Assembly (NCBI RefSeq): GCF_000006765.1
Contig: NC_002516.2
Length of the DNA stretch: 64,000 nucleotides
Source: Pseudomonas aeruginosa PAO1
GTDB taxonomy: Bacteria; Pseudomonadota; Gammaproteobacteria; Pseudomonadales; Pseudomonadaceae
Reading direction: 5' to 3' (one strand)
The notes beneath the pieces were generated by a model, which searched no databases, was not told where the DNA came from, and saw only the letters and a program-made list of their open reading frames with translations. Numbering within the stretch: position 1 is the first letter of the stretch; each line of letters opens with the position of its first letter. This document shows positions 50,776 through 50,984 of this stretch, one piece after another. A program made the position numbers and the translations under genes.

Positions 50776-50984
50776 CTTGTCCACAGGGCGTCGCACAGTT
50801 TTCCTGAACAACTGTGGCAGCGGGATGACCACGCGTTGGGGATAAGTACCTGGCGCGAGCGCTGTTCATTTTCTGACCAGCCACGCATAACCCTCGCCGA
50901 TTCAGGGGTTTGGCGGTTCTTACCCACCTTATCCACAAGCCCCCGCACAGAAATCCTGAACAACCTCAGGCGGCGTTATCCACA
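50776..50984. other. DnaA-box cluster with a duplicated 37-bp module
   Basis: Perfect TTATCCACA at 50929 and 50976. One-mismatch boxes at 50777 (TTGTCCACA) and 50837 (reverse TTATCCCCA). Modules 50776-50812 and 50928-50964 have identical spacing. Confidence 0.75.

Follow-up and report, generated by a model that had tools for sequence, protein, structure and literature searches.

A conserved tandem array of DARS-like DnaA-box units upstream of ydfG in Pseudomonas: a probable DARS2-type DnaA-reactivating element

Introduction

Why does a 356-bp non-coding gap in the chromosome of Pseudomonas aeruginosa PAO1 carry two copies of a module built from three DnaA-box-like sequences? The gap (50610-50965) separates a YdfG-like SDR gene from an OCD-family gene within the stretch of 64,000 nucleotides analysed here, which we refer to as the window. 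An earlier note on this DNA had proposed a 'DARS- or datA-like' element, that is, a site that either regenerates active DnaA or inactivates it. Experimental proof that DNA can catalyse the reactivation of DnaA exists only for Escherichia coli, where boxes I and II, opposed across 5 bp, form the active, ADP-releasing pair of DARS (PMC6868365). Beyond E. coli, sequences resembling DARS have been reported only from close relatives, Vibrio cholerae included, and at matching map positions, those of uvrB and mutH. P. aeruginosa possesses an essential Hda homologue, PA0947, whose depletion raises the oriC/ter ratio (PMC13729189). It follows that ADP-DnaA is made in P. aeruginosa and would need recycling, which renders a reactivation route plausible in this bacterium. 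The earlier note knew of no description of such an element here, and our survey of the literature, which did not cover the original DARS paper (Fujimitsu et al. 2009), likewise yielded neither an account of DARS or datA in Pseudomonas nor any mention of the PA4907-PA4908 gap.

Results

Two three-box modules between ydfG and PA4908

The two modules, CTTGTCCACA-GGGCGTC-GCACAG-TTTT-CCTGAACAAC (50776-50812) and CTTATCCACA-AGCCCCC-GCACAG-AAAT-CCTGAACAAC (50928-50964), emerged from a repeat search as a 41-nt direct repeat of 78% identity at an offset of 152 bp, each with a 35-bp three-box core. The sequence and the repeat search therefore agree with the earlier note on the modules, their coordinates, the length of the gap and the offset, and both of the further boxes that it placed at 50837 (reverse, one mismatch) and 50976 (perfect) are present. 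Its label of cyclodeaminase for the upstream gene, in contrast, has to be replaced: with NCBIfam this gene scores as an OCD-family pyrroline-2-carboxylate/piperideine-2-carboxylate reductase. The features of the locus, with the modules designated units A and B, are as follows.

49848..50609, minus strand: YdfG-like SDR gene, the downstream neighbour (NCBIfam PRK10538 YdfG, 320 bits, under the 411-bit equivalog cut-off); start codon at 50609-50607
50712..50726, no strand assigned: Fis-like site of unit B, GGTCGTTTTTTGAGC, 1 mismatch, starting 50 nt after the core
50777..50811, minus strand: unit B, DARS-like core, homologous to the ydfG-proximal module B elsewhere
50811..50803: unit B box I-like sequence TTGTTCAGG, followed by a 5-bp spacer
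50797..50789: unit B box II-like sequence TGTGCGACG, followed by a 3-bp spacer
50785..50777: unit B box III-like sequence TGTGGACAA, 1 mismatch
50837..50845, minus strand: extra DnaA box TTATCCCCA, 1 mismatch, opposite to the strong boxes and 25 nt before unit B
50864..50878, no strand assigned: Fis-consensus site of unit A, GGTCAGAAAATGAAC, exact match, starting 50 nt after the core
50929..50963, minus strand (the ydfG direction): unit A, DARS-like core, homologous to module A of other Pseudomonas
50963..50955: unit A box I-like sequence TTGTTCAGG, followed by a 5-bp spacer
50949..50941: unit A box II-like sequence TGTGCGGGG, followed by a 3-bp spacer
50937..50929: unit A box III-like sequence TGTGGATAA, perfect
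50966..51898, minus strand: OCD/mu-crystallin-family reductase gene (PA4908), the upstream neighbour (NCBIfam NF004793, 410 bits, over the 322-bit cut-off); stop codon at 50966-50968
50976..50984, plus strand: perfect DnaA box in the last OCD-family codons (V-V-D-N), 12 nt from unit A
51848..51840, minus strand: perfect TTATCCACA at the 5' end of the OCD-family gene, codons A-Y-P-Q
51900..51892, minus strand: TTATGCACA, 1 mismatch, over the OCD-family start codon

The gap probably corresponds to PA4907-PA4908, the tag PA4907 being given to the SDR gene by its adjacency to PA4908-PA4913 as annotated in PMC13024080. Other neighbours in the window are a LivFGMHK-like ABC transporter, a GntR regulator and a VanB-like reductase (NCBIfam), and the gene order was identical at all eight of the assembly places examined that carry the exact SDR protein, a protein indexed in 33,554 blocks of the assembly collection. 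Across the window the plus strand has a negative GC skew, so that the minus strand, which bears the genes and both units, is the leading strand. The OCD-family stop codon lies 2 nt from box I of unit A (50966-50970), with no clear terminator between them.

Perfect TTATCCACA boxes are concentrated around the gap. Three occur in the 64 kb, at 50929(+), 50976(+) and 51840(-), all within 920 bp, against 0.03 expected from shuffles, an expectation lower still than the value of about 0.1 first claimed; none of 100 shuffles gave three. Boxes with at most one mismatch number nine in the window against 2.3 expected, six of them inside 50777-51900. Two of the three perfect boxes fall in the coding sequence of the OCD-family gene, the box at 50929 being the only non-coding one. 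No partner boxes at DARS spacings accompany the box at 50976..50984, and no counterpart of the box at 50837..50845 was seen in fluorescens-type loci. A one-mismatch box stands at about the same distance upstream of ydfG as the 51840..51900 pair in four of six nitroreducens-group loci.

The arrangement of a box, 3 bp, a second box, 5 bp and an opposed box is found twice in the window at up to 10 total mismatches, and both occurrences are the modules. Markov-1 simulations (n=40) gave 0.4 such triples on average and at most two, so that in the window by itself the layout exceeds chance only slightly. Each module has a single strong box; in the window the middle box carries five mismatches and the opposed box four, and the box II-like sequence retains TGTGC with five of its nine positions mismatched.

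Comparison with E. coli DARS1, DARS2 and datA

The E. coli cores were read straight from MG1655 and are listed with the consensus of the genus Pseudomonas.

E. coli DARS1: box I TTATCCACT, spacer ATTCC, box II TGTGGATAA, spacer CCA, box III TGTGTATTA
E. coli DARS2: box I TTATTCACC, spacer TTTTC, box II TGTGGATAG, spacer AGT, box III TGTGAAGAA
Pseudomonas genus consensus: box I TTGTCCCCG or TTGCCCCCR, 5 bp, box II TGTGGAACN, 3 bp, box III TGTGGATAA

The units of the window share with DARS1 and DARS2 both the orientation of the boxes and the two spacings (opposed box, 5 bp, box, 3 bp, box), an exact match in the comparison that the earlier note had proposed as a check. In the genus consensus, box I (TTGTCCCCG) and box II (TGTGGAACC) carry three mismatches each, and the functional low-affinity boxes of E. 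coli DARS2 match the consensus at only 4-6 of 9 bases. Double DnaA boxes at 2-3 bp spacing are a general target of DnaA, promoters included (PMC11317965), and it is therefore only the opposed box at 5 bp that argues specifically for DARS. The box II/III pair, with its 3-bp spacing, is a double box precisely of the kind present at the nrdA, polA and purH promoters (Stringer et al. 2024), but sites of this type lack a conserved opposed box at 5 bp and a fixed Fis and IHF flank.

DARS2 also resembles the Pseudomonas locus in its surroundings. It is non-coding, lies away from oriC and contains further DnaA boxes, and its Fis and IHF sites come after the core on the side where Pseudomonas has the Fis-like and, in most species, the IHF-like site. 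The published order in E. coli is core, FBS1, IBS1-2, FBS2-3, and IHF-like sites are found there at +58 and +74. Of the Fis sites, FBS2-3 are essential and follow the IHF sites, whereas FBS1 is dispensable and stands between core and IHF; the conserved Fis-like site of Pseudomonas, between the core and the IHF-like site, occupies the position of FBS1. The two also differ in that the strongest box is box II in E. coli and box III in Pseudomonas, that DARS2 requires IHF while the P. aeruginosa version lacks an IHF consensus, and that DARS2 is flanked by mutH and rppH whereas the Pseudomonas locus adjoins ydfG and, in the window, the OCD-family gene. With these neighbours, rather than uvrB or rppH/mutH, we rejected the locus as an orthologue of either DARS1 or DARS2. 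DARS1 has the same core layout, and its inverted repeat GCAAGC...GCTTGC after the core sits at about the position of a Pseudomonas repeat described below; it differs in being a single unit with a consensus box II that is active without IHF or Fis.

The DARS2 region of MG1655 (L082 1452-1486) contains a second triple in DARS layout, TTATCCCAG-CTTTC-TGTGGATAA-CAT-GGTGTAAGA. It is separated from the DARS2 core by 316 bp and shares its orientation, which parallels the tandem units of Pseudomonas.

E. coli datA is laid out differently, with a TTGTAAACA-3-TTATCCACA pair, an AT-rich stretch where the IHF site would sit, and a 3-bp-spaced pair. It shares with the present locus the character of a non-origin DnaA-box cluster and the double box at 3-bp spacing, but it contains no good triple in DARS layout (the best has eight mismatches), depends on IHF and has the opposite effect, ATP hydrolysis. 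With this different layout, and with no IHF consensus at the units of the window, identity with datA is not supported.

Conservation across Pseudomonas

A protein-guided scan yielded 80 species-level loci, whose ydfG orthologues are 81-86% identical. In about 70 of the 80, a DnaA-box cluster lies 200-650 bp upstream of ydfG, so that the conservation beside ydfG orthologues suggested as a check on the module is found across the genus. Alignment of 12 species delimits a structured non-coding region of about 650 bp, which comprises modules A and B, about 100 nt each and repeats of one another, a double box TGTGGATAA-GTC-TGTGGGNAA, a single box and several other conserved motifs; the two modules of the window are the homologues of A and B. 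The upstream gene in most species is a livF-like ATPase gene, the OCD-family gene being found only in the aeruginosa and nitroreducens groups. When both strands of all 80 loci (about 700 kb) were searched, triples in DARS layout with at most eight mismatches occurred only upstream of ydfG, always in the orientation of the gene and in two or three copies.

Over 111 distinct cores, mean information per position was 1.54, 1.21 and 1.75 bits in boxes I, II and III and 0.67 bits in the spacers, the conservation of the boxes being partly imposed by the thresholds of core selection, which constrained box II only loosely. Thus the contrast that had been noticed between the two modules of the window, conserved box-like positions and diverging spacers, extends to the genus. 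Where box I departs from the DnaA consensus, the rarer bases in these cores are those of the consensus. Within the species, two haplotypes, separated by about 15 SNPs and one indel over 391 bp, account for the eight P. aeruginosa assemblies compared. The 54 box positions are free of these differences, and a spacer holds one; chance would put about two in the boxes, so the avoidance fits constraint without being significant.

In Pseudomonas sp. H3(2019) the entire array lies about 3.5 kb upstream of ydfG (L052 8-520) and is therefore not tied to the ydfG promoter. A P. putida strain carries a group II intron (Rfam RF02001, RF01998, RF00029) just upstream of the DnaA-box array (L037 1579-3372). 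Perfect DnaA boxes are also conserved downstream of ydfG in many fluorescens-type loci, for example at 5280-5288, 5351-5359 and 5751-5759 of L048; these fall inside a 377-aa minus-strand ORF, and coding constraint or DnaA binding are candidate causes. By record coordinates, whose zero point need not be dnaA, the locus lies at 8-12% of genome length in five of ten complete genomes.

Fis-like, IHF-like and inverted-repeat flanks

Fifty nucleotides past each core there is an inverted repeat with an A/T-rich centre that fits the Fis consensus GnnYAnnnnnTRnnC (PMC8682772). With at most one mismatch, this +50 site occurs in 37 of 40 non-redundant A modules of Pseudomonas and in almost every one of 44 non-redundant B modules. 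An IHF-like site (two mismatches) starts at +90..99 in 41 of the 47 A modules of other species; no IHF-like site is found in B modules, and no IHF consensus after either unit of the window.

A further inverted repeat, CTGnAnGCC-N11-GGCnTnCAG, is conserved between the core and the Fis-like site in most species, with 84% complementarity (alignment columns 25-33 and 45-53; intervals 50879-50928 and 50727-50776 in the window). Its 9-bp arms showed no covariation above shuffles, 80 and 94 of 500 shuffles equalling the observed values. RNAalifold returned no consensus structure on 99 pooled modules and only three pairs on 48 A modules, and at permissive thresholds no Rfam family matched the window or nine related loci. 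We therefore read the inverted repeat as a DNA site and not as RNA. A consensus scan found no sigma-70-like promoter over the units, either in the window or in the related locus L048.

A wider family of DARS-layout elements

A metagenome scan with the core pattern, in which the flank was left unconstrained, returned at least 118 loci (L084-L201) with GC contents from 0.31 to 0.70. About 25 of the loci listed are the ydfG locus. The neighbours of the remainder vary (priA, clpS, uvrC, gltA, hemW, PP4765-type flavoprotein), and uvrB, mutH or rppH was found on none of the 118 listed. Among 51 non-redundant listed members, an IHF consensus starts at +80..89 in 32-33, compared with four or fewer in any other 10-nt bin; an exact Fis consensus stands at +50..59 in 20 and almost nowhere else, and a Fis site with at most one mismatch at +50 in 36. 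As a control, near-perfect cores were collected from 23 viral contigs (IMG/VR, L215-L237), and only one of these has an IHF-like flank. Two of the 118 listed loci are near dnaA and most members have no or one extra box within 400 bp, on which grounds hidden origins were rejected as an identity for the family.

One member represents a second Pseudomonas-like locus:

L119 1726-1760, minus strand: core TTACCCACA-ATGCC-TGTGGAACG-GCC-TGTGGATAA, with a Fis-like site

It is flanked by a histone-deacetylase-family gene and a TIGR03862 'PP4765' flavoprotein gene, with tesB-like and GNAT genes next to them, and it occurs also in L171, L136, L197, L087 and L204; it is absent from the window and from the 80 ydfG loci.

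An nhmmer profile was built from 51 members with a strong box II only, Pseudomonas-like members being excluded, and gave the following matches.

E. coli DARS1: E 2e-4, the best E. coli match
Window 50938-50863 (unit A): E 0.005, profile positions 31-107
E. coli datA double box: E 0.02
E. coli DARS2: E 0.027
The 80 ydfG loci: 104 matches with E <=0.01, all upstream of ydfG and on its strand, 43 of them full length

Since the alignment to the window spans profile positions 31-107, the similarity extends beyond the boxes.

Discussion

We consider it probable that the locus is a DARS2-type DnaA-reactivating element composed of two tandem units. The case is carried by the layout of the cores, their conservation throughout the genus, their independence from the flanking genes, the position of the locus away from the origins and its membership, by profile, in a wider family; DnaA, Fis and IHF binding, ADP release and an effect on initiation would then be expected by analogy with E. 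coli. Relative to the known DARS it would be a variant in three respects, namely its tandem units, its strongest box at position III and its non-syntenic position. Of the original alternative, 'DARS- or datA-like', the first half is thus favoured by layout and conservation, whereas the second half loses ground on the different layout of datA and on the missing IHF site.

By analogy with the E. coli DARS, DnaA would first bind the consensus box III-like site of each unit and from there bring in another DnaA, oriented head-to-tail, at the weak box separated by 3 bp; a third would join at the opposed weak box 5 bp further. The two DnaA molecules facing each other across the 5-bp spacer may loosen each other's bound ADP, and the emptied DnaA could depart, take up ATP and be able to fire oriC again. 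Coupling of this activity to the growth state might come from a Fis-type bending protein bound at the conserved +50 site, and in most Pseudomonas the IHF-like site about 90 nt from unit A may contribute too. Two features of the window form the main weakness of this scheme. Its boxes I and II are weak, whereas E. coli has a consensus sequence at box II and depends on boxes I and II as a pair; and no IHF consensus follows either unit, whereas E. coli DARS2 needs IHF. It could be that the P. aeruginosa copy is a reduced version, or that it acts mainly by binding DnaA.

The latter thought leads to the reading of the locus as a DnaA sink or datA-like site, which would titrate DnaA or stimulate ATP hydrolysis and so delay re-initiation. 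Several strong boxes do lie within a short span, the degenerate boxes I and II of P. aeruginosa may fail to form a head-to-head pair, and the family profile touches the datA double box. Yet datA itself offers no better triple than one of eight mismatches, the IHF consensus is absent from the window, and the opposed box is kept at exactly 5 bp across the genus, which titration would not require. A sink is therefore, in our judgement, unlikely.

Control of transcription by DnaA, coupling expression of ydfG or of the PA4913-PA4908 operon to the replication cycle, seems to us quite unlikely as well. Unit B precedes the ydfG start codon by about 165 bp, promoters regulated by DnaA typically have double boxes, and E. 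coli DARS1 likewise stands upstream of a gene, uvrB. On the other side of the gap, PA4908-PA4913 are co-induced (PMC13024080) and, with no clear terminator between the OCD-family stop codon and unit A, transcription of that operon would enter the units. However, the units of the window and of L048 showed no overlapping sigma-70-like promoter, the same architecture stands beside unrelated genes in other bacteria, the array is 3.5 kb from ydfG in L052, and the roughly 650 bp of conserved architecture in fluorescens-type genomes far exceed what a promoter operator needs.

An origin of replication, whether cryptic, relic or of plasmid descent, is highly improbable. It is true that DnaA boxes cluster here with predicted sites for bending proteins, and that more than one sequence of P. 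aeruginosa is known to replicate autonomously: its oriC2 (Yee and Smith 1990; Jiang et al. 2006) is a DnaA-box cluster outside the dnaA-proximal origin of the same species. The two known origins, however, are at rpmH-dnaA and upstream of mnmG, 5 kb apart, and tblastn found no DnaA, MnmG or RsmG homologue in the window. A window of 64 kb with neither dnaA nor mnmG cannot contain oriC1 or oriC2, so oriC2 was rejected as an identity, and the statement of the earlier note that this is not oriC stands. In addition, the region is about 69% GC with no AT-rich unwinding stretch visible beyond a 6-7-nt T run, and most family members have no or one extra box nearby. Equally improbable is a pair of small RNA genes or terminators with incidental boxes: an inverted repeat followed by a T run comes after each core in many species and a few terminator-like matches exist, but the Rfam, RNAalifold and covariation results above are all negative and the T run is the centre of the Fis-type palindrome, being A-rich in some species.

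The conserved element in DARS layout offers a defined target of 300 bp on which to ask whether control of the ATP/ADP-DnaA cycle is alike outside the enterics, and it makes the timing of chromosome copying in Pseudomonas testable. The wider family suggests where to look in many other bacteria. With chances that we put slightly below even, DARS2-type elements (core, Fis at +50, IHF at +80 to +90) may be widespread, positionally unconstrained replication-control DNA across Proteobacteria rather than something special to E. coli and its close kin. Were this so, Pseudomonas would have at least two such loci, the ydfG tandem array and the histone-deacetylase-family/PP4765-type flavoprotein locus, and DNA-catalysed recharging of DnaA would count among the old, general features of the bacterial cell cycle.

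Some phage contigs also bear bare cores. Nearly all the viral cores are without the Fis and IHF flank, and one of them, TTATCCACAGTTTCTGTGGATAAGTATGTGGATAA, is found in seven contigs together with two close variants. This recurrent core could belong to a phage origin or serve in the manipulation of host DnaA.
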